Position numbers and translations under genes: made by a program | Shown here: one piece after another, positions 29,269 through 50,000 of the stretch | How positions within the stretch are numbered: position 1 is the stretch's first letter | How the letters are laid out: each line of letters begins with the position of its first letter | The notes under the pieces: generated by a model | What the model was told of the DNA's origin: nothing | What the model saw: the letters and a program-made list of their open reading frames with translations, nothing else | The model's database searches: none | Origin: Tubulanus polymorphus | Taxonomy: Eukaryota > Animalia > Nemertea | DNA: 64,000 nt | Assembly: GCF_964204645.1 (NCBI RefSeq) | Contig: NC_134033.1 | Coordinates: 2,128,131 to 2,192,130, forward strand | Direction: 5' to 3'

Positions 29269-30866
29269 GGTCCAAGCTCTTTATTAAATTCTCTCATACA
29301 ATTATAACTTAATCCCTGGAGAAAATATCATGAGTAAATAAATTACGTGCTGCAAATCTCTAGGGTATGCCTAGTTTTCTGATGTAGCTGCTTCGTACGC
29401 GGGCGCGAGTGTGACCCCAGAGCGCGTCGAGTTCTACCTGAGAGTAGTTTAAAAATACAAATGATAAAATGTTGATTGCGAAGCTAGCTTACGTACTATA
29501 TAAACCGATTTCTTGGATCACAGAGGATAGGGTTGAAGCTCTAACAAGAGGAATAAACACCGCTGGGTCCAGCTACACAGTCGTGCCTACAAATCTAAAA
29601 AAGGTCTTAAGTCTTAAGACTGGTATTATGTTGTTAGATTGGTTATAGAACCAAAGCTTAGACTGGTCTTTAGTGGTTAGATTGGTTAATGGAACCAAAA
29701 TGAGCTTAGACCGGTCTTAAGTTGTTAGATAGGTTATAGAACCAAAATGAGCTTAGACTGGTCTTAAGTTGTTAGATTGGTTAACAGAACCAAAATGAGC
29801 CTAGACTGGTCTTAAGTTGTTAGATTGGTTAATGGAACCAAAATGAAGTTAGACTGATCTTAAGCTTTCAGATTGGCTATAGACCAGAAATGAACTTAGA
29901 CTGGTCTTAAATATAATCCATGACTGCGCAACTGTCCCCTGAAAATGATCAGTAGATAGGCTCGACGTGTTGCCCCTTTTTAAAAGTTTTGAGTAGCTAC
30001 AAGCGGCAAAATGCTGCCTTTGTCGAATTCTGCATATCTGAATTTCAATCGAAACTGCTAAAATTTACACGGTCCAAATATGACGGTAGTGGCTTCATGA
30101 CCAACCGCGTCAATAAAGAGAGGAAAGAGCAAACATTTGAAAAGCTATATAATTTCACAAAAATCTTCATAGAAAAGGGAAGAACACTATATAAATTGAA
30201 AGGTCAAATTTAACAACCAGACCTCACTTCATCTACGAAAGTATTCATGGCAGACGAATGTTTTTGTAGATGACTTCTGCTTCAAACAGCTTAGTAGCAG
30301 ACGCCCGTCTGAAATACTGGATCCAGTTCCACAGTTTGTAAGTTTAGACTTGACTCGGAGTTAACTAATCGAAAATGAACAAATTTTTCTTCAAGAGTTA
30401 ACTCCAGACCAGATCAAAATAGTAGTTTAATTAAAAATGAACGAGAAATCTGAACAAGTATTCTGATTCCTCTCAAAAAGAAGTTACAGCCAGATCGGTA
30501 ACTCAAACTAACAACTGAGGAACTGGATCCTGTTTGAAGCAGGCGTCACTGTAGACGTGAGACTACTATTTGGCATTGGGCGCTAGTTTACCTAAAGGCA
30601 AGAGCAGACGACCATAACTAACGTATACGCATCCTATACACACAGCTATTGGTAGTAAATTATATTTCTAAAAGAGGAATGATTTTTGAAGAGGTACTCT
30701 TTGATATACTTTATATATTCAAAAATTGAAAAAAAAAACAACGCTGCAAATGTTCGTTATTGGACAGAAACGATTTGATAGTTTTTTTTTAAAAATCTTC
30801 GGTCGACACGAACGACCCGAAACCTTCTGCGTCTAAATCTACGCGCGACAACCTCGCGAATCTCGT

Positions 30867-33800
30867 TTAGCCTCTTGAAAGAATCTTGAAGAAATATTCG
30901 ACCTGCGAAAATAAACAAACGAGATTTCGAATTAACTGATTGATCGAGCGTTTAAGTCGATTTCTGGCCTCTCGAAACGAAACGGGGCCCACGGTTTAAA
31001 CCATTTCGGTGCCACAACTAATTTTACCCCGGGGGACTTGATTATCTGAGAAACATGGTCCCCACAGTTGTATGAATTCAAAATTCCCAAGTTTTTCCCA
31101 AGTATTTCATGAGTGATTTTTCAATTTTCCCAAATGGCAATGAACAGATATCCTCATGCTACAATCAAAATTTTAGTGGTGACTGGTTGATAAAGGTGAT
31201 TCTCGAGGGAAGTTGCCGAAAGTAAGTTACCCTTGGCAAATGCAATACATGAAATGTAATGAATTTCCCAAATATTTCCCTGATTTGAGGAAAATTTTTC
31301 AAATTCCCAAATATTCCCAAACCGGGAATTATTATTTAAAAATTCCCAAGTTTCTCCCAATTTCCCAGTTCTGTGGGAACCATGGAGACAATTGATCCCA
31401 GGGCAAACAGTGTCTACTTTATCACTTTACTAAAATCAGACAGCCGCGGTTCAGGATTTCGAATCGTACGCCACCTACCTCTAATAGCGCGTCCTCGGGT
31501 AAATCTGTACAATGAATCGCGTTCTGGATTTTGTCTTTACCGAACAAAGCTCGTAACGTTCGCGGTCTCAAGTGTCGCGCGATCTCCTGAAATATCGAAA
31601 CTGAACGAATAAAATACTTCATTTTCATATCGAAAATTAAGAGGCACAAGTCATAAGCTTGGTCTCTACCGGCCGCTTCTATCAGATTTACAGATTACAA
31701 ACTCTCTACCGGCCGCTTCTATCGGGTTTACAGATTACAAACTCTCTACCGGCCGCTTCTATCGGGTTTACAGATTACAAACTCTCTACCGGCCGCTTCT
31801 ATCGGGTTTACAGATTACAAACTCTCTACCGGCCGCTTCTATCAGGTTTACAGATTACAAACTCTCTACCGGCCACTTCTATCGGGTTTACGGATTACAA
31901 ACTCTCTACCGGCCGCTTCTAACAGGTTTACAGATTACAAACTCTCTACCGGCCACTTCTATCGGGTTTACGGATTACAAACTCTCTACCGGCCGCTTCT
32001 AACAGGTTTACAGATTACAAACTCTCTACCGGCCGCTTCTATCTGGTTTACAGATTATTCTATTCTGGAATAGGTAGAGCGTATTCTGGTCGAAACGTAT
32101 GCACCAGAAGAGAAGATAATAGAGAATAAGTGCTGAATAACAGGCACACTGCTAGAGTACATTTACACCACGGTGCGATGTATCGTTAGTTACTTATATT
32201 TCCCTATGTTTGACAGGTGCTGCCATCTTTCAATAGGGATAAAAACTAATTACTAGTAACATCAATAGCGAAGCCTATCTTTGAATTATGCACCGCAGTG
32301 CGGTGTAGACGCACTGAAACGGTTGACACCATTTTTGAAATTAACAAGTTCGCAAAGTTCAATTCAGCAGCGTCTGCCGCCAAAACGATCGCCCCGCACT
32401 CACCGGATCGGACGGTCCGACGAACTCGCGGAATTTCACCGGCGCGTCCTGCGCTCGTATCTCCATGGCGATGCACGGACCGGTCGTCAATTGTTGCACC
32501 ATGTCGGCGTATTCGGCGACGACGTCCTTGTAAACCTCGAGGAATTCCTCGGCGTTCGCTCGATCGAGGCTGAACATCTCGAGCGCCGAGATCTCGAATC
32601 CGGAATCGATTATCGAACTGATTATTTTACCCGCTACACCTAAAACATCAATCGGTTTAAAAAACAAATGTTTGTAGATTCAGATACAATTTAGGGCCTA
32701 CATCAAGTTTCTTAGAAAAAGGATGGCCGCAAAATGGCCAGGTATAATCTTTAACCCGGGGATTAACTCAATTCATTTTCTATTTGGTTAAACCCCTGGA
32801 TAAAAATAATATCACTTTATAAAACTGGTCCCTAAGTTCCATAGTCATGTGCTAGAATGAGACTAGCATTCTAAGCCTATTATTCAAACTTCCGAGTCAA
32901 ACTCTGGATTAAAATTACTTCATTTTCGATGAATAAACTCTGACATTTTAAGATAATTGAGTCAAAATAGTTAAAATTGGTTCATTTTGAGTTAACTGCT
33001 GCTGCAGAACTAAGTCAAGCATTTCAGGCAGACGTCATCTACAGTTCCTGATGTTATTGATAATCAAAAAACGCCCTCTTGTGTCTTCCAAACTAATTGA
33101 GAATTCTAGCCATCTACTGGTGTCAAGTGCGCCCTCTAGTGTCTATCAAACTGATTAAGAATTCTAACAGTCTGCTAAAGTGTAAAGAGCGCCCTCTAGT
33201 GTCTATCAAACCATCTGCTACAGTATCAAGAGCGCCCACTAGTGTGTTGAATAATTCTTACCGTTTGCTACTGCGTGTGGTTTAATAACGCAGCACGTAC
33301 AATTCGTGAATTGAGCCGTATTTTTACGATTGCTCGGCTGCGAGAAGAAGAACTCGAATTCTCGAATGGCGTCGTCGTTCGTCAGCGATCCGTGGGCCGC
33401 GTTGTGACCTTTATCTACAATTACAAACATAATATATATAACATGGTGAAGCAATGAACACATGTGAAGTGTGGACGATCAGTTTTTGAAAGTATGCTGA
33501 TAAAATGTCTAATGTCTGGTGTTTGTAGTTCATTTTCAATTAAAAATGTCTCAGGTGAAGCACTGAACACATGTGAAGTGTGGACGATCAGTTTTTGAAA
33601 GCGAGCTGATGAAATGTCTAATGTCAGTTGTTTGTAGTTCATTTGCAAAATGGTCCACCAGGCTGCAACTGATTCCTGCGTCAATCTGATGCATTCTCTC
33701 TGAAGACTTACCGGTTCCGAATTCAGCTCGGATGCTCGTCGGTTTCTCCTTGCGAGCCACCGTCGAGTCGGTCGGTCCCAACATATCGCGCCATTTATTG

Positions 33801-36800
33801 ATGGAATCGTGACCCATCAGTCCTAACGCTACGATCGGCGCGCTTGTCATGTAGTGTAACAATTCACTGGAACAATGCAGAAAAAAATAACATTTTTGAA
33901 TAAATCTTTTTTTCATGAAACCCTTTTCGACAGTTTCCTACCCTACGTCACAAAAAAGAACTTAAATAATTGTTTTTGTAAAATTGCATCGCAGTGCGGT
34001 GTATAATGCTCTTACCCTTAGTGCAGTGTATCATTAGTTACTTATATTTCATTGCGTTTGACAGATGCTGCCATCTTTCAAGAGATTAACTAATCAGCAA
34101 TTACATGATACACTGCACCGTGGGGTAAAGCAGTAATGGAGCAGTATACACCACACTGTGGTAAAATTTTCCCAAGTTCTCTAATTGTCGCCAGCATTGC
34201 GTACAGCGATATATGCGATGTAAGTAACTTACTTGAAGAATGGTTTGCTGTTGTGTTCGGCGTAGAACTCTGCGGCCTCCGATCGCGATAGGTGGCACAT
34301 TTTTAATTTCGTCAATAGCAACCCGCTGTCCGCGATCCGATCGAGTATTTGACCCATCTTCGCCGTCGCGTCCGGTTTGATGAGACCCAACGTTCTGAAA
34401 AATTAAACCATGCAGGATTCTTACAGATCACGGAAAATTAGTGAAACCAGGGAATGCTTCGAATTATTAGTGTCTTGTTGTTCGAGTGACGAGTGACACA
34501 AAGAACATCTCGATAAGAAACAGCCCTCACTGAGGATATCTTATAATTTAATCAGGGAATTTGAATTTTTGGTGTCTTGTTGTTCTTGCTGGTGACGAGT
34601 GACACAAGGAACCTCTTGATAAGAAACAGCCCTCACTGAGGATATCTTGTAATTAAATCAGGGAATTTGAATTTTTGGTGTTTTGTTGTTCTTGCTGGTT
34701 ACCAGTGACACAAGAGGAGACCTGAATTCTTTCAACTGTAGCCACTCTCTGTAGCCACCAGGACCTGGGGCCAGTTGCACAGTCGTGACTTAAGTCCAAA
34801 AGTGGTCTTAAATCTTAAGACTGAACTTAAGTCTAAGCCATGACTATGCAACCGGCCTCTGGTTCCTTAGTGAGAGCTTAAGACGACTCAAGACCAATCA
34901 AAGACTATGTTAGTTTTAAAGCAAATCTTACAATTCAAGACCAGTTTGGAGTTTGGACTCGCCTATGGAATTGGCCCGGGAATCCACGAACTCAAGATTG
35001 ACGAAACCACTGCTCAGTTGGAACCACTCAGCCAACTGCTGACGGTAGTATCCAGGGTATCATTGAGGTTTTTTCCTGTTCTACCATCATTGATAAAGTG
35101 AAAACTTACGAATTCGTTTCGAGTTTATTCTGCGTATATTTGTCTCCATAGTCGACTATTTTCAGTTGTCGCGAGTGAACGTTGATAACGCTGTTTATAT
35201 ATAAACTCGCCGGAGACAACGTCTCCGACTTCGAACGCTTCAGGAACAAACGACGATTCTTCAAATCGAACTGAAAACAATGAGACAGAAAAATCTTTAA
35301 TGAATTTTGCGCTGAAAAATTATCGTAAATTTGGATTAAACGTCACGTGACCTAGCTCCACAGTTACGAGTTAAAACCCTTTCAGTGCCGATTAGTTAAT
35401 ACCCGAAAATGCTCGCGATTATTCAAAAATTAAAAAAAAAACCAACCCCAATGTGTTGAATAACGGCATAGAACTTAAAGTGCATCTACATCGCAACTCG
35501 TATTTCACTATGTTTGACAGGTGCTGCCATCTTTTGATGGAGATAAAAACTAATTACAAATTGCACCATGTCGCAGTGTACTAAGTCCATCACTAATCTA
35601 TACACCGCACTGAGGTGTAGAAGCAATGAAAGGGTTAACTGAACTGTGGAATTGGGTCCCGGGGCCAGTTGCTGAAAAGTCGGTTAAAGATAACTGTCAG
35701 ATAAATACAATGAACTTTCAATTGTCACTATGTCAACTATCCACTGGTCAGACTCTAACCAACTTTTCAGCAACTACAGCCCCTGGATTTCAAATCTCCA
35801 AATAAGGATATGTAATACTAACATTATATGCTTCTCTTACCCCCCCCCCCCCAATGCATTTTTTATGAATGGCTTTGCAAAGAATAATTTGGAAGAAATA
35901 TCGAAGTAACAGTTGCAAACAGGTTTCAGAATTGTGAAAAGTGTGTACACTTTTCACAGTTCTGAAACCTGTACTGTTTCAATTGAGAATTCTACTATGG
36001 AATCATTTACGGTTACCCTTTCATTTTGGATTGTTTGCTATTTAAAGAACTTCTGTGTCTCAACAAAAAACTTGTATTCTATTCAAAAGCTTTGAAAGGA
36101 TTTTCTTTCCTATATTAGATCTAGGCCTCTGAATCTCTCAGAACTGGAAATAGTTTATTCATTATCCAGACTGAATATATCATTTTTCATGCCAGACATA
36201 GAGGAGTGGCCCGAATAAAAAATCAACAAAATTATTCAATTCAATTAGAAATTAATGATCTTTCCGCAAAACTAATCTTAAAAACCAGTCTTCATTTTGG
36301 TTCTTCAGCCATTAGAATAGAATCACCACACAGCTGAGCTGACTGATCACCACGCTGACCAGATAGCCAACTGTTCATACCTGACTGATCACTGCACAGC
36401 TCACCTGACTGGTCACTACACTGACCGAACAAACTTACTAACTCAGTGGTCTAGTGGTAGAACGCAGTGGTAGTGGTTTGCAACCTAGAGACCCAGGTTC
36501 AAATCCCGGCCGGGCTAGGTGTGCTGGGTTGAGGGTAGTTACAGCGCTGTTGGCATTTTGAAAAATTGAAAATCTTGATTGATTTTAACCCTTTCAGTGC
36601 GTCTACACCGCAGTGCGGTGTATAAATCAGTGATGGATTTTGCTGGTACACCGCACTGCGGTGTATTGATGTAATCAGTAATTTGTAATTATCTCTATTG
36701 AAAAATGGCAGCAAGTGTCAAACATAGTGAAATACTAGTAACTAACGATACACTGCACTGCGGTGTAGACGCACTATAGTGGTATTCCCATTGTTCAACA

Positions 36801-39800: not shown

Positions 39801-42800
39801 CAGCAGGTTACTTCAATGACCAGTCCAAAGATTGAAGATCAATTTCGGACTTCATTAAGGCATGACTGTGCAACGTGAACTAGTGTTTAGAGGGTTTAAG
39901 TTAAAACTGATCTTTAGAAGTGAAACAGCAATTCTAAAGATGGCCGTTACTGCCATCAATTTTTTCGTTAAAAGCTGATCTAATTCAAAATCGCAAAACT
40001 CTAAATTTCTAGTCTAAATCAAAAATGGATGCGACTAAAAGGTTAAGAATTAAATGTATAATGACGTCACACGCAAGCGCGCGCCGGGCGGGGGTACACA
40101 CTAACAGACGGTCTTACCGATGTCGGACTCGCGGCGCTGAACTGTCGCCGTGACGACGACGACAATACCAACGAAGCCGACGTCGTCGCCGTAACGACGA
40201 CGCGCTGTTGAGAACACGCTCGATACAACAATCGGTGCACTACTTGCGTAACCATGGTTTCTATTCAAACCGAACGAATTAATGATCCCGTTTTTTTTTT
40301 GGTTTTGTTTTTGGCGTTTTATCGACTACGACTGACACTGTCGTCGCGGTGATCGCGGTCCATGCCTGCAAAAATTCCGAAAGTCGGAAAAACGGAAAAA
40401 TAAAGAAGACGTATTTTAGATGACTGCGTTCGAAAAGACGGGTCCTAGAAACCGGTGAAATAAACCGCAAAAACAACAAGACCAAGTTCTACAGTCGTGT
40501 GTTAGAGTCGACTCTGTGCTGGAGTCGTGATTCCACAATAATTACCGACTCTATTCCATTCCACAATCATTGATGACTCTGGAGTCAATTCTACAGACTA
40601 TATAGTCAATTCCACAATTGTTGACTCTGGAGTCATTTCTACAGACTCTGGAGTCATTTCCAAATTTGTTGTCTCTGGAGTCATTTCTACAGACTCTGGA
40701 GTCATTTCCAAATTTGTTGTCTCTGGAGTCATTTCTACAGACTCTGGAGTCATTTTCAAAATCGTTGACTCTGGAGTCATTTCTACAGACTATATAGTCA
40801 ATTCCACAATTGTTGATTCTGGAGTCATTTCTACAGACTCTGGAGTCAAATCCAAAATTGTTGACTCTGGAGTCAAATGCACACCTATAGTCCTACTACG
40901 GCTCTAGGGTCAGTCGCGCAGTTGCGCGAAGTCCACATACGAACGACCAAAGACCGTCGCATACACGACCGCGAGCAAGATCTCGACTCCGGGAGTCAAC
41001 CGAGTAAGTCGCGCGTCCTCAAAATATAATTCCTCGCAATATTGCCGAAATTCGAACGCTCTCTCCGTTTAAAAGTCAAACGACGGTAACCAACGACTGC
41101 AGAACGCGCCCCTGTGTAGATACATACAAACCCAACTGTAAAACACTAATAAAGACTCACTGTAGTAAAACACCACACTTTAAAATCATATGACTGAAAT
41201 GTTTCTATTTTCGGGTTTAATACCGGTTTCTAGTGAAGGTTAAAGGGTGGTTGTTTTTTGTGTGGTTTTTGTGACGATTTGTGAAACAAACGACGGAGAT
41301 CAGCTTTTAAAAACAGTGTATATTTCAATACGCGAAAAACGTGTATTTCAAAAACCAGACTCGAGACTCATAGTTCGAGAAGAATTATTTCGCGACAGTT
41401 TGTTGACAGATCTAAAGAGAACTGGTCTTTTTGAAAATATAAAACTGATCGAATAGAAATCTAAAGCGCGTTTATTCGTATAGGTACTAGGCGACACCTG
41501 GTGGTAACTTACTGGGAGATGATACCCGGGGTCGGCCAGTTCCTGACTACTGGGATGAATTGCACTGTCATTACTTAGATTTAAGACCAGTCTAAGCTCA
41601 TTTTAGTTTAGCGAAGCTAACAAATTGAGACCGGTCTAAGCTCATTTTGGTTCTATAGCCAATCTAACAACTTAAGACCAGTCTAAGCTCATTTTGGTTC
41701 TATAACCAATCTAACAAACTTAAGACCAGTTTATAAAAGCTCATTTTGGTTCTATAACCAATCTAACAACTTAAAGACTATGAGTCTTAAAGATTTAAGA
41801 CAAGTTTTGGACTGAAGTATCGACTGTGCAACTAGCCCGGAGTCGGCGAGATCTAAGGCCTACGAAATCTAAAGCATAGTTGAAGAGTTGATTGGAGGCG
41901 GCTGATCTGTGATATTTGTTTCACAAGTCATAGTCACTGTAGCTAATATACGACGGAACCTCGTCAAAAATTCCCGGCTGCTCCTAGCCGAGACAGTTTC
42001 ATCGGACCAGTACGAACTCCTACCGCTGAGATTAACTCGATTGAATCGCGGGTGACATTTAGAAAAATGGGTTGAGAGTTTCACGAAAAACTCTCTTAAC
42101 CCTTTCAGTGCTGACTAATTAATACCCTATAGTGCTGGAGATAATTTGAAAATTTTCAAAAATTCCTCCATAGTGTGTTGAATAACGGGAATACCACTAT
42201 AGTGCATCTACACCGCGGTGCAGTGTATCATTAGTTACTAGTATTTCACTATGTTTGACACGTGCTGCCATTTCTCAAGAGAGATAATTACTAATTACAT
42301 CAATATACCGCAGTGCAGTGCACTAGCAAAATCTATCACTGATTCATACACCGCACTGCGGTGTAGACGCACTGAAAGGGTTAAGCTTTAAACCGGGTCG
42401 AGTTTGAATCGTTAACCTCGTAATGAAATAAACCGATAAACAGAAACTAAACCACAAATTTGTGAGGAAAACAATTCAACCTTTAAAAACAGTTTAAATC
42501 TTTTCATATTCCCGAAACTCACGGGCTGCAGTTACTGAAAAGTAGGTTAGAGTTAACCTGTGGATAAATTGACAAAGTGACGATTAAAAATTCATTGTTA
42601 CTGTCGTATTTATCCGCTGGTTATCCGTAACAAACTTTTGACCAACTGCAGCCCCGCGTTTTGATTCGACATCAAAAATCGTAATTTAATCGGAAAACAC
42701 TAAAAATCAGTCCAGTTTTGATAATCTCAAGGTGGTTGCGAAATAGTCCGATCTCTGTTCGTCGTAACGAGGTTCCGCTGTATAGGCAATACGAATTCAT

Positions 42801-43014
42801 CGATCACGGTGTTAGTACTAAGAGAATGAAGCCCTGGCAAGCGGGGACGGCGGCGTCTGCTCCGTACGTCTGCCTGTCTTACCATTTCGATGGATTTATC
42901 TCGCGGATAGTAGAGCAGTAGATAGCGGCGCACGATCGCGGCGTGCGAGTCGTACCACTCGGCGGTAAACGCGTAGCGCTCGTCCGCGCTGTCGTCGCCT
43001 AACGGAGCCATCAT
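30867..43014 (-). CDS. NME7: Nucleoside diphosphate kinase 7 (DM10 domain plus two NDK domains)
   Basis: Exons 43014-42883 (ERYAFTAEWYD..RRYLLLYYPRDKSIEM), 35270-35110 (FDLKNRRLFLKR..SRQLKIVDYGD), 34394-34233 (TLGLIKPD), 33866-33712, 33414-33262 (NAAHGS..CTCCVIKPHAV), 32639-32404, 31586-31479 (ARHLRPRTLRALFGKDKIQNAIHCTDLPED), 30902-30867 (VEYFFKILSRG*). Confidence 0.96.
31662..32057. repeat. 40-bp minisatellite x~10
   Basis: ctctaccggccgcttctatcgggtttacagattacaaact; reverse copies at ~49640-49720. Confidence 0.95.
36440..36520 (+). mobile_element. tRNA-derived SINE head or tRNA pseudogene fragment
   Basis: A-box-like tggtctagtgg and B-box ggttcaaatccc; spacing is too long for a canonical cloverleaf. 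Confidence 0.55.
36589..36876. mobile_element. piggyBac-like MITE (TTAA target duplication)
   Basis: TTAA|ccctttcagtgc ... gcactgaaaggg|TTAA. Confidence 0.88.
38838..39370. repeat. ~40-bp minisatellite x~13
   Basis: gggccccacaatcaccacaataactagcagggataaagtgt units. Confidence 0.95.
40118..40255 (-). CDS. Candidate alternative first coding exon of NME7 encoding a mitochondrial presequence (46 aa)
   Basis: Kozak accATGG; peptide MVTQVVHRLLYRACSQQRVVVTATTSASLVLSSSSRRQFSAASPTS; donor TCG|GTAAGA in phase 0, matching the phase-0 acceptor at 35270. Confidence 0.65.
40570..40878. repeat. Minisatellite of near-palindromic GACTCTGGAGTC units (21/27-bp alternation)
   Basis: Repeated gactctggagtcatttctaca / gactctggagtcatttccaaatttgtt. 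Confidence 0.85.
42100..42380. mobile_element. piggyBac-like MITE (TTAA target duplication)
   Basis: TTAA at 42096-42099 and 42381-42384, 12-bp TIR ccctttcagtgc, internal palindromes tacaccgcactgcggtgta. Confidence 0.9.
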
Positions 43015-44250: not shown

Positions 44251-45679
44251 AGAAGGGTTATCCCGATGGAGGGAGCACCAAGCACTGACTAGGATAACTA
44301 CAATCAGGTGGTTCGAGAGTCACTTTTTTTTGAAAAGGCAGTGGATATTTTGCCAATGCGGCATTATTTTAGTAAACATTGATTTGCCAACATCTAGATA
44401 CTGATCAATCAGGGTCCAGTTCCACAGTTCTGAGTTCAAATTGACTGACCATTGAAAATGAACTAACTTTAAACTCAGAGTTAACTCTAACTCACAACTG
44501 TGGAACTGGGTCCTCATGATTTTATTCGGTTTATATCTAGGAACGGCGATATTTGGCAAATTGTCGCTGCGCACATAATTGCATCTCAACTTCCTCGGCA
44601 CATTCAGGATCAGAGCTTGTTCATTATTTAAATAATTAAGGCACAGACACCCCACGAGCAGCGCGGGAAAGTGTGTATCAACTAACTATAATCAAGTGAC
44701 GTGTGATTAGAGAATCTGTGAAGTGCTTAGGATATACAGAATCCCTTCAAAGTCAAAGACCTATAGGCCCTACGGACTGAAAGAAAAACTGTCAACCACT
44801 GAGGACACTACTGTTGGCAAATTTTGGTCGTCTGAATATGAGCGGTTCTCTTTTTTGGTTTTTGACCAGTTTTCTGGTGGTTAGTCGTCAGAAATAAAGA
44901 CCGTCACATTCCGATTATTTACTTTTTGGTAAAAGTACAGATGCGCGCACCTCTCCGCGTAAACGGTTCAATCAATTACATTAAATATCATTGTTTCAGA
45001 TTCAAAATGTCATCGGCAATTTAGTACATTGCCATTGGTTAATTTTAAGATATCTTCACTAGAAAGATTTTAGCCCGGATTCTGTCATTCAGCAGATTAC
45101 GTCAATCACGAGAGGTGCGCATCTGCACTTTTACCTACTTTTTTATCGATGAGTTTCCAATGACTTTCGATACAATATCGAACAGACAATTTTACACTTA
45201 TATTTACCAACATTAAATCCACCGAAATACCACTAATTTCCGGCAAGGCCAATGGTGGAACTTGAACCAGAGACGCTGCACTAGCTAGCATAGCATAGGA
45301 ATGCTGATTGAATACTGGGGCCTCCGGGTTCGAGAATACGGCTCCATCAACTGGACCGCTCAGCCTCTCATGTCTGTTCTCCACACTTCCCTTGAGTTTT
45401 AAGTTTTAAGTTATCTAAGTCTGTGCACATGCGTGGTATAAATCAGAACAGCCATTGCGCAAAATAGCGTTAGCCGTTAATACGAATAATGCCGCATCGG
45501 CAAAATATCACCAGGGTCAGGATTTTGAAAAAGGTTGAAAAAAAGAAGGGAAAAAAAATTTTCATTTTTTTTGGAAGTAGTAAGATAGGTTTCCTACATG
45601 TTTCCAGCAAATATTCTAAACCAGTAACATTAACACAAGCCTAACACGCATCACCGATTAGTAAGGGAAGATGTTATTT

Positions 45680-46090
45680 ACCTGTTGAGTTGTTTTTGAA
45701 GCGGGTTTCAGCGGCAGTTCCAGTAAACACTGACCAGTCCACACTCGATCTTTCAAAAAGTTGTTGTGGCAACCCGAACTTTTACAACGAGCTCCCTGAT
45801 TGGCCCGCATCCCTGACCTTACAACGAGCTCTCCCATTGGTTCACCTCCGGAAATCTATAACCAGCTCTCCGATTGGCTTAGTTAGCAAATCTACAACGA
45901 GATCGCTGATTGGTTTAAAGTTTTTCAAGTCACATGACCCATGACTTGGACAAAATGGCGGACTGACAGTTGTAAATTTTGCCAACTTGGTTTTTGACAC
46001 GTTTTTCGAACATACGGCGCTCCGTGAATCGTGGTGGGCCCCACCACGATTCACGGAGCGCCGTATGTTCGAAAAACGTGTCAAATTCAA
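45680..46090. promoter_or_regulatory. Putative NME7/BLZF1 bidirectional promoter
   Basis: Minus-strand donor (CAG|GTAAAT) at ~45680; X-box-like GTTGTTGTGGCAAC 45760-45773; ATTGG at 45799, 45836, 45873, 45909; GTCACATGAC ~45929; YY1-like AAAATGGCGG ~45952; palindrome 45993-46085. Both first coding exons begin right after splice acceptors, so non-coding first exons are required. Confidence 0.65.
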
Positions 46091-46863
46091 ACGTGTTAAA
46101 TTCATGTTTAATCGATGCAAAATTCATGAAAAATATCGAAAATTTGCCTTTTTATTCCCGTTTTGACAGTTCATCTTCATCAAATGTAATTTATTGCGGA
46201 TACGAAATACGCAATATTGTAAATATCTTGGAAATTACCGCAGGATTTGAAGTATTTGAAGTTTTGGGGTGGAAAGTAGCTCAGATCATTCAATATCCTA
46301 GATACTTAATTCTTTTTATAGTAAGTGGTATGTGTGGAGATCTTAAAAGCTACTTGGCCTATAATGTATTCGCACTTGGACCCTTGGTTCGTTGGCCCCC
46401 AAACTTCAATTGCAAGCTCATTGTGGAAATTACCTCATAAAGACTTCGATCAATCACTTGTAGTTTCTTCAGGCTACCTTAACACAGGTACTTGATTCAG
46501 TTCTTGAATAGACTGGTTACTAGGATGGATTAGGATACACATGATTTTCATGTCTACACCATCAATCAATTGCTTACTGGCCGTATGGATGGGACAAAAA
46601 TATTTAGACAATTTTCATTATTAATTCAGCCACCTTTCAGCACGCTCTTGAGGTTGCTTGAAGCAATACTGCCATCTGAGACACTAAACCGACGAACAAA
46701 TTTTGTTTTTAGGGGTCACAACCAGGTCTTAAGTTGAGCAATTGTGACTTAAGTCCAAAAGTGATCTTAGATCGTAGTTTTCGGTAAAAATGAAAGTGTC
46801 CTCTATAGGCCTATGCCACTCTCAAAAACCTGTTATGGAGAACACTGAACTTTTAAGACCCAG

Positions 46864-47073: not shown

Positions 47074-50000
47074 ATGTCGTATTCTGTGACCGGTGATAGA
47101 TTAAAAACGGCAAAATTCATTCCTTATGAGCCGACGAAGGCCGCGACCAGTCCGCCGATTTCCTCTACCCCGACTGGCGCGCGAAAAACCAACAATAACC
47201 TCCGCCGATACGACAACCATCGAAAAACTGACGCCCTGCGAGTTCGCGTCGGTCCGCGACGCCCCGACAACCTGATCAGCTACCCGAAACCTTACACGGT
47301 CGTGCAGCACGACCGCCAGAAACGGGAATCCCCCGACGAGAAAACGTTGTCGTTCGCCGAAGAGACGTCGATATCGGCGATAATCACGCCGGAGAATACG
47401 CCCTCTGTTGAGAGAAAGCTCGTACTACAAGACAGCGTTATCGCGGAAACGGATGATTTCCCGGTCGCCGCGACGACGGTGACGGCGAAACGCGAACTTT
47501 TCTCGGCAGACGGATATTCGTCGAAATATTCCCAGGTGGCGCCGCCGGCGAATAAAGATGTTACGTTCTCGGCTGACGATCGGAGTCGACCAGTTAATAA
47601 AGTCGACCCGCTGGTCAAATCGGATGACCAGTCGTCGACCGTTATCGATATAGGCGATTTGGAGATGCACGAAATCGATCGTCTGCGACGGCTGAATAAA
47701 AGTTACCTGACGCAAATCGAACATTTGAATCAAGAGCGTAACGAGTTTAAAAGCGAGTTGGACGCTCAATTTCAGGTTCGTTCGATTTCAAAACGCTTCA
47801 TTTCTTGATTAATAACTTTTCAGTCTCAATACCCCCGAGCGCTGGGCCCAGTTTCACAAAAAACTTTAACTCAAATTTGTGGTTTCATTGCTTTTTTGGT
47901 TACGTCATGTTTTCATTGAGGACAACAAACTTAACGTTTTTCGTAAACACTTTTTCGTGAAACTGGTCCCTGGAGATAATTTGCACTGTCGTAACTAAAG
48001 TCCATAAGTTGTCTTAATTCTTATGACTGGCCTTAAGTTGTTAGATTGGCTATAGAACTATGTTGGTCTTAGACCGGCCTTAAGTCTAAGCCATGAATGA
48101 CTATGCCACCAGCCCAATGGAGATAATTTGAAAATTTTGGAAAATTCACCTTGTTTTCATGATAATGAATCTCATTCTCGTTTCAAACCGCTTTAGGTGA
48201 ACACGGAATTAAAGAAGCTTCTCGTCGCGTCGGTCGGTGAAGATTTACAACACAGAGTTGAACGAATAATCAGGTAATTATTTCATCTGAATCCTGGCAC
48301 TGGTTCTATAGTTATGATTTAAGTCCGACTTAAAACCGTGAGACTGGTCTTAAGCAGTTCGATTAGTTATAGAACTAAGATGGTCTTTGACTGGGGTTAA
48401 GTCTAAGCCAAGAACCAGCCCCTGGAATTGATTCATATTTTCAACAGTGGTCTTAAATCTTAAGACTGGTCTTAAGCTGTTAGATTAGCTATAGAACTAA
48501 GATAGTCTTTGACTGGTGTCAAGTCTAAGCCATGACTATAGAACTGGCCCCTGGAATTAATTCATATTTCGAGAAATTCATATTTGTTTCGCATCCAGGC
48601 TATTGTTACCATTATTGCGGTATTTATGAAGTTAAAGATTTGATTATTTATTTCTTCTGTGTTTAGGGAGAAAGCTCACATGACGAATGAGATCGGTGAC
48701 TATCACAGACGCATTTCAACAGACGGCGAAAACCTCGATAAAGTTTCCATTCAAGCCGACATGTGGAGAAGTAAATTCCTCGCCAGCAGGTTAGACTTCT
48801 ATATTCCCCTATGACATGATGGTATTACCTTTCAAAATAAGATGGCTGCCTTCATAAATATCCCTATGACATGATCACATTAACCCTTTCATTGCGTCTA
48901 CACCGCAGTGCGGTGTACGAATCGGTTATAAATTTTGCTAGTACACCGCACTGCGGTGTATTTATGTAATTAGTAATTATCTCTCTTGAAAGCAGGCAGC
49001 ACGTGTCAAACATAGTGAAATACTAGTAACTAATGATACACCGCGCCGCAGTGTAGACGCACTATAGTGCTATTCCCGTTATTCAACACACTAGGATGGA
49101 ATTTTCAAAATTTTCAAATTATCTCCAGCACGATAGGGTATTGATTAGTCAGCACTGAAAGGGTTAAGTCTCTAGATAAGATGGCTGCCTCCATGAATCC
49201 CCCTATGACATCATCTAATTGCCCTCTAGTGAATTGACCTACGTTTAGACACTTTTAGAAATGACATCATCTACAAGGAATCCCAACTTGACGTCATCAA
49301 AATTGTTGTAATTTTTTTGGAAAATCTTTTTAATGTTGAAATATGTCGTACATTGAACAGAGTTATGGTTGACGAGTTGGCGAAATGGAAAGCGCATTTA
49401 TCGGTGAGATACAAAGAAATTCAGAAAACCCTCGAAGATTTATTGCACGAAAGACAACAATTACAATCGAGTTTACTGCTAACGTACAGGTAATAAATCA
49501 TCGGGGCCCCAGTGATGGCTTAGATTTGAGACCGGTCTTAAGATTAATCCTCGTAGTAGAGTGGAAACAAGTTCTACCCTGAGATAACGGTTAAAGCTCT
49601 CAAATATAATTTTACTCTCTACCTACTCCGGAATAGCTTTAATCTGTCAACCTGATAGAAGCGGTCGGTAGAGAGTTTGTAATCTGTAAACCCGATAGAA
49701 GCGGTCGGTAGAGAGTTTGTCAGGTTTTGATTGGTTTCAACCAATTCCGGAATTTTCTTCTGGTGCGTTTGTGTTGCGCAGAATACGATCTACCAATTCT
49801 GGAGAATAGCGTTATCTATAAACCTCATTGAAGCTGCCAGTTTGTAATCCCAAACCGAAATACGTTCAATCAAAATCTGAATTGAAATCTGTTGAATTCG
49901 ATGAAATTCTTAGCATTCGAAATTAGCTCTATTTTTCCAATGATTTTTCTTCCAATCGAAACCTGCCTCATGTTTTCTGTAACATTCAGGCAGCACGGAA

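Follow-up and report, generated by a model that had tools for sequence, protein, structure and literature searches.

A RefSeq-listed alternative N-terminal exon of ribbon-worm NME7 may exchange half of the DM10 domain for a mitochondrial presequence

The first intron of the NME7 gene of the ribbon worm Tubulanus polymorphus contains an alternative N-terminal coding exon, and in the most likely reading of our analysis, with a probability of about 0.55, the choice of this exon yields a matrix-imported NME7 that has a broken half-DM10 domain and an intact NDK pair. One of two phase-0 N-terminal coding exons would be chosen to give two useful NME7 proteins. The canonical exon would complete the DM10 domain and so give the axonemal/centrosomal protein, while the alternative exon (probably 40365-40118), entered by way of a promoter within the intron or a leader exon further upstream, would put a basic, acid-free peptide of 46 residues in the place of DM10 strands 1-3. 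This peptide would serve as a matrix presequence, with import through TOM/TIM23, an MPP cut after Arg-Gln and subsequent removal of Phe by XPNPEP3/Icp55, leaving Ser40 in front of the broken half-DM10 and the two intact NDK domains. The window analysed is a stretch of 64,000 nucleotides of contig NC_134033.1, and its NME7 features are collected in Table 1.

The coding part of the alternative exon comprises 138 nt, or 46 codons, on the minus strand, and lies within the 7612-nt intron that runs from the canonical exon to the acceptor at 35270. It begins in the start context ACCATGG and ends at the donor TCG/GTAAGA, and both it and the canonical N-terminal exon have consensus splice sites and are in phase 0. 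The encoded peptide contains 5 Arg, 15 Ser/Thr and zero Asp/Glu, with an RRQF-S motif that includes Arg37, and has no Pfam match. Every one of these sequence features listed by an earlier note on this DNA (138 nt, ACCATGG, G/GTAAGA, five Arg, no Asp/Glu, RRQF-S and phase 0) is indeed present. The same note had called the exon hidden, which it is not, as RefSeq already lists an NME7 isoform, X2, made up of the 46 residues followed by exons 2-8.

Table 1. NME7 exons and associated features, in window coordinates except for the acorn-worm row.
Feature	Coordinates	Strand	Basis
Coding part of alternative N-terminal exon, 46 aa, presequence-like, RefSeq X2	40118..40255	-	sequence, codon use, RefSeq
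Probable 5' leader of alternative exon, with 14-codon upstream ORF 40363-40319	40256..40365	-	best-scoring intron-1 acceptor; acceptor use inferred
Perfect CRE palindrome just 3' of alternative-exon donor; one of two in window	40062..40069	.	sequence
Candidate intronic promoter or non-coding first exon for X2; single-copy, partly CpG-rich	40870..41560	-	inference; top intron-1 donor after 41513
Canonical first coding exon, 44 aa, DM10/PH strands 1-3, RefSeq X3	42883..43014	-	Pfam, RefSeq, predicted structure
Upstream exon annotated as X1 coding start; probably non-coding leader exon	45682..45837	-	RefSeq, codon use
Shared exon 2, second half of DM10; phase-0 acceptor common to all three N-termini	35110..35270	-	Pfam, RefSeq
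Exon 3, NDK domain A	34233..34394	-	Pfam, RefSeq match
Exon 4, NDK domain A	33712..33866	-	Pfam, RefSeq match
Exon 5, domain A end (His211) and domain B start	33262..33414	-	Pfam, RefSeq match
Exon 6, NDK domain B	32404..32639	-	Pfam, RefSeq match
Exon 7, NDK domain B	31479..31586	-	Pfam, RefSeq match
Last coding exon	30867..30902	-	RefSeq match
Acorn-worm NME7 extension, three exons	L023:8001-9262 (Ptychodera flava); L003:8001-9249 (Glandiceps talaboti)

A homologue search with the canonical NME7 exons retrieved XP_074658553.1 (T. polymorphus NME7-like isoform X2), in which the 46 residues are joined to exon 2 at 35270 and continue through exon 8. This is exactly the junction that had been proposed, and the protein is identical to the proposed isoform; it is an automatic model, present in RefSeq under a name that is silent on targeting and without comment on it. 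RefSeq holds three forms of the protein, X1 with its start in the upstream exon, X2, and the canonical X3 with two transcripts, and the exon coordinates joined here reproduce all three proteins exactly. Under the NCBI rule, as described for an earlier release, rare introns are filtered and a variant of a multi-variant gene needs full support from one long alignment or from RNA-seq of one sample (PMC5737279). Because alternative variants are kept only with such RNA support, the 40118 to 35270 junction has very probably been seen in RNA, a support for splicing that is indirect and that says nothing on translation. X1 satisfied the same rule despite intron-like codon use at its start (codon score -18.9 bits), and on this score we rejected the X1 start as a genuine coding N-terminus. 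The upstream exon is probably a non-coding leader exon read in frame, and the X1 N-terminus probably arose as an artefact when a transcript that skips an exon was annotated.

The alternative exon is a real one, with exon-like codons in its proposed frame only. With a synonymous-codon model trained on 1177 codons of the T. polymorphus genome, the 46 codons score 27.6 bits in this frame, the best of the six (0.61 per codon), compared to 0.20-0.63 per codon for the canonical NME7 exons, while intron windows average -20.5 and reach a maximum of 9.2 bits. Only 1.2% of dinucleotide shuffles attain 27.6 bits (p about 0.012). Intron 1 holds no other mini-exon that runs from an ATG to a donor and is phase-0, acid-poor and basic. 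On a small home-made splice matrix built from the window, the donor of the segment comes third among the 523 GT sites of the intron. A search of the 268-Mb genome assembly found the segment to be single-copy, and a repeat origin was rejected on that basis. Exons are CpG-rich relative to introns in this genome, and CpG-rich DNA scores positive in all frames, with one antisense frame at 19.5 bits, as would be expected if the segment were CpG-rich by chance or belonged as an exon to some other nested or antisense gene. We regard this as very improbable, since RefSeq joins the 46 codons to NME7 exon 2, stops interrupt the antisense frames, and the surrounding sequence showed no other chain of exons.

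Splice-site scores suggest how the alternative exon begins. The best of the 412 AG sites in intron 1, on the small home-made matrix, is at 40365, 110 nt 5' of the ATG, and for this reason the alternative exon is probably 248 nt long with a 110-nt leader. Within the leader, the 14-codon upstream ORF lies ahead of the X2 start, which counts against the import reading. The highest-scoring donor of the intron follows 41513 and lies within a single-copy stretch; X2 transcripts may start at a promoter within the intron, near 41.5 kb, or run in from the leader exon at 45.7 kb. Around that upstream exon we also observed four CCAAT boxes (45600-46200) spaced at about 36 nt, which face a plus-strand gene at 47074. 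This gene may be golgin-45/BLZF1-like; in humans, golgin-45/BLZF1 lies head-to-head with NME7.

Reading in phase 0 from the canonical exon through 40365 meets a stop after 28 codons, so the canonical and alternative N-termini cannot share one protein. The same stop opens the way to a different explanation, in which the 46 codons go untranslated and the exon serves as a poison or regulatory cassette, or belongs to a minor transcript, and its inclusion after the canonical exon via 40365 leads to a stop and nonsense-mediated decay, the annotation having simply taken the next long ORF. The strong acceptor at 40365 and the premature phase-0 stop are what such a cassette would have, and RefSeq X1 is a case in which the pipeline chose a start whose codon use looks non-coding. 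Furthermore, human NME7b, a form without the first 36 residues that can be expressed, was not detected as an endogenous protein (PMC4072575). However, a poison exon has no need of frame-specific, exon-like codon use or of a good start context, and the phase-0 frame of the leader scores -6.2 bits. We consider a cassette of this kind unlikely.

The part of NME7 that is exchanged can be placed with some precision. Of the Pfam model PF25364 (the NME7 N-terminal PH/DM10 domain), positions 2-37 fall within the canonical exon and positions 38-88 within exon 2, so that DM10 is complete only in X3 and is halved in X2. An AlphaFold model of X3, with a mean pLDDT of 94.3, has strands at 14-22, 27-36, 41-46, 51-58, 72-75 and 78-85 and a helix at 88-94; as the canonical exon ends at residue 44, X2 is predicted to be without two strands and most of the third. 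The claim that half of DM10 is swapped is thus borne out by the predicted structure, which assigns strands 1-3 to the canonical exon, and in this model it is these strands that the 46-residue peptide replaces. The remainder of the protein is shared. PF00334 matches two tandem NDK domains in exons 3-7, and structure matches include a solved chain with E 3e-147 and a chain named NDK 7 with E 5e-141. The residues that characterize NME7/FAP67, the phospho-His of domain A and the Arg of domain B for gamma-TuRC binding, are present: domain A has retained His211 and Arg178, and domain B has Arg325, the equivalent of Arg322. As a separate observation, Leu214 (P0271 numbering, in exon 5) replaces the Asp of the HGSD motif of NDK domain A; this position reads SD in 187 fetched homologues and SL in 3, which is the number of Tubulanus isoforms. 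At the other end of the gene, a single-copy, phase-0 ORF of 25 codons with a stop (29360-29437, minus strand) lies 1.4 kb beyond the last NME7 exon and opens with the same two residues as that exon. It is a candidate alternative last exon, with a weak acceptor (3.6 bits) and a codon score of 0.27 per codon, and is absent from the three RefSeq proteins.

The breakpoint of X2 within DM10, at a conserved intron, is that of human NME7b and of NME7 forms of about 340 residues annotated in many animals, among them frogs, fish, birds, a crinoid, a sea urchin and corals. That NME7 without DM10 strands 1-3 can be expressed, as is the case for human NME7b (PMC4072575), supports the import reading of X2. 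The human NME7b and 340-residue forms start at a junction Met without a leader peptide, unlike X2. The shared breakpoint would also suit an X2 protein that stays outside mitochondria. As a form without a complete DM10, comparable to human NME7b, it would lose the axonemal seam site, could still bind the gamma-TuRC or ELLEn-module partners through its NDK domains, and would have the peptide mainly as a source of a start codon. Indeed, NME7 can bind the gamma-TuRC without DM10 (PMC4072575), TCHP attaches to the C-terminal NDK domain (PMC10973386), X2 retains the equivalent of Arg322, and the amphipathicity of the peptide is ordinary. Such a protein would, however, leave both the absence of Asp/Glu and the R-x-F-S motif unexplained, and we think it unlikely.

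We compared the properties of the peptide with those of open dinucleotide shuffles. RefSeq X2 places it at the protein N-terminus, and codon use agrees. Its net charge is +5, with only +3 in residues 1-30, and the first acidic residue of X2 is at position 48. No Asp/Glu occurs in 3.8% of open shuffles. The sequence R37-Q-F-S40, 7 residues ahead of the exon junction, fits RX(F/Y/I/L)-(S/A), the two-step MPP/Icp55 consensus (PMC8847149), and an R-3 cleavage motif of this kind is found in 14% of open shuffles. The combination of no Asp/Glu, an R-3 motif and five or more basic residues occurs in 0.6% of open shuffles and in none of 692 real-exon windows; these features were picked after the peptide had been seen, and the 0.6% thus overstates the case. 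CpG richness accounts for the five basic residues (96% of open shuffles), and the helical hydrophobic moment of 0.68 at residues 6-16 is attained by 28% of shuffles. The peptide also has two Tom20-type patterns. Examined for the Leu-rich hydrophobic core of an ER signal peptide, it has its best 13-residue hydropathy, 1.87, over a Val/Thr/Ala/Ser stretch. The earlier note had seen in the peptide the hallmarks of a matrix presequence; the missing acidic residues and the R-3 motif are what carry this signal, the helical moment being unremarkable and the charge of residues 1-30 modest. Mitochondrial targeting of X2 is a plausible inference.

The idea that NDK activity is rerouted to the mitochondrion fares less well. 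Human NME7 has no NDP-kinase activity in vitro (PMC4072575), and the T. polymorphus genome encodes NME5, NME6 (G000:C2:22.76 Mb) and a tandem pair of Group I NDPK genes on the minus strand (L027, G000:C5:4160500-4168500). Ahead of the first Group I copy is a short exon-like ORF, rich in Arg/Lys and acid-free, that is a candidate mitochondrial presequence, and this NDPK is likely to be mitochondrial. Elsewhere in the genome, a large gene carries several degenerate NDK-like repeats (L026, G000:C6:6688000-6696000). With NME6 present, we rejected compensation for its loss as an origin of mitochondrial NME7, and with the candidate mitochondrial Group I NDPK also present, a mitochondrial NME7 would replace no missing enzyme. 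NME6, the likely mitochondrial Group I NDPK and the inactivity of human NME7 all count against the import reading.

We also looked for the exon in relatives. The earlier note had proposed looking for a conserved exon in related species, and none was found in intron 1 of Lineus (413 nt) or Owenia; three acorn worms likewise have no such mini-exon in this intron, all of these being distant relatives, and the closest NME7 in the database is 66% identical. Most of what a 50%-cluster search returned were artefacts of read-in from introns, and it gave no alternative N-terminus that resembled a presequence. In a set of 237 fetched NME7 proteins with 360 or more residues, a basic and acid-free start was seen only in X2 and in a protein of Glandiceps talaboti (P0151), and, counted separately, Ptychodera flava X2 (XP_070539278.1) also starts in this way. 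Both acorn-worm proteins carry an N-terminal extension of about 107 residues ahead of an intact DM10. The two extensions are 41% identical, have their first acidic residue at position 33 and a net charge over residues 1-30 of +5 (Ptychodera) and +6 (Glandiceps), and end in R-x-(L/F)-C-T.

The middle exon of the acorn-worm extension overlaps, on the opposite strand, the first coding exon of RNF7/RBX2, where both strands appear to be coding, and for this reason its conservation, also seen in Saccoglossus, was rejected as evidence. In exons 1 and 3, which lie outside this overlap, the ATG, splice sites and frame are kept with one 6-nt indel, 25 codons specify the same residue compared to 16.1 expected (p 0.00045), and 13 are synonymous compared to 6.5 expected (p 0.008), while the flanks are 23-27% identical. 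On these counts, exons 1 and 3 are under coding constraint. Exon 3 was not found in Saccoglossus, where the 10,000 bases upstream include 2494 N. A search with the extension gave itself as the sole match and missed even Ptychodera, and is thus uninformative; a single-sequence fold of the extension (pLDDT 34) was of no use. No similarity was detected between the extension and the ribbon-worm peptide (E 1.0), and acorn worms are likely to have acquired the presequence-like start of their NME7 separately. As an independent parallel, the extension supports the import reading of X2. Acorn-worm NME7 resembles X2 in its basic start with few acidic residues and in having a motif, here R-x-(F/L)-C, immediately ahead of the mature protein. 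In contrast, it adds three exons to a whole DM10, while X2 replaces half of the domain. We tentatively suggest that mitochondrial forms of NME7 arose in animals on two or more occasions, in ribbon worms through an exon that takes the place of half of DM10 and in acorn worms through three exons added ahead of an intact DM10.

Dual targeting by alternative first exons is a known and ordinary mechanism, in which an alternative N-terminal exon adds a presequence and the domain usually stays whole. X2 would differ from this in that the presequence replaces half of a folded domain. What is new here is apparently the use of a known targeting mechanism on NME7, at a cost of half a domain, and its appearance twice. 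The NDK fold is found in mitochondria as NME6 and NME4, which are separate single-domain genes; T. polymorphus NME7 would be, unlike these, a tandem-NDK ciliary gene dual-targeted by exon choice. NME6 is the sole exclusively mitochondrial Group II member, and NME7, regarded as purely ciliary/centrosomal with an unclear catalytic role, is listed only in cilia and centrosomes (PMC13256974, a 2026 review). Our literature searches found no paper on a mitochondrial NME7, and in none found was the acorn-worm form described as mitochondrial. If the import reading is true, the tandem NDK domains would have a matrix job, and a separate origin in two phyla would mean that there is a use for the NDK pair away from microtubules. 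It would also provide a simple test system, a single gene whose two isoforms are alike except for their first 44-46 residues.
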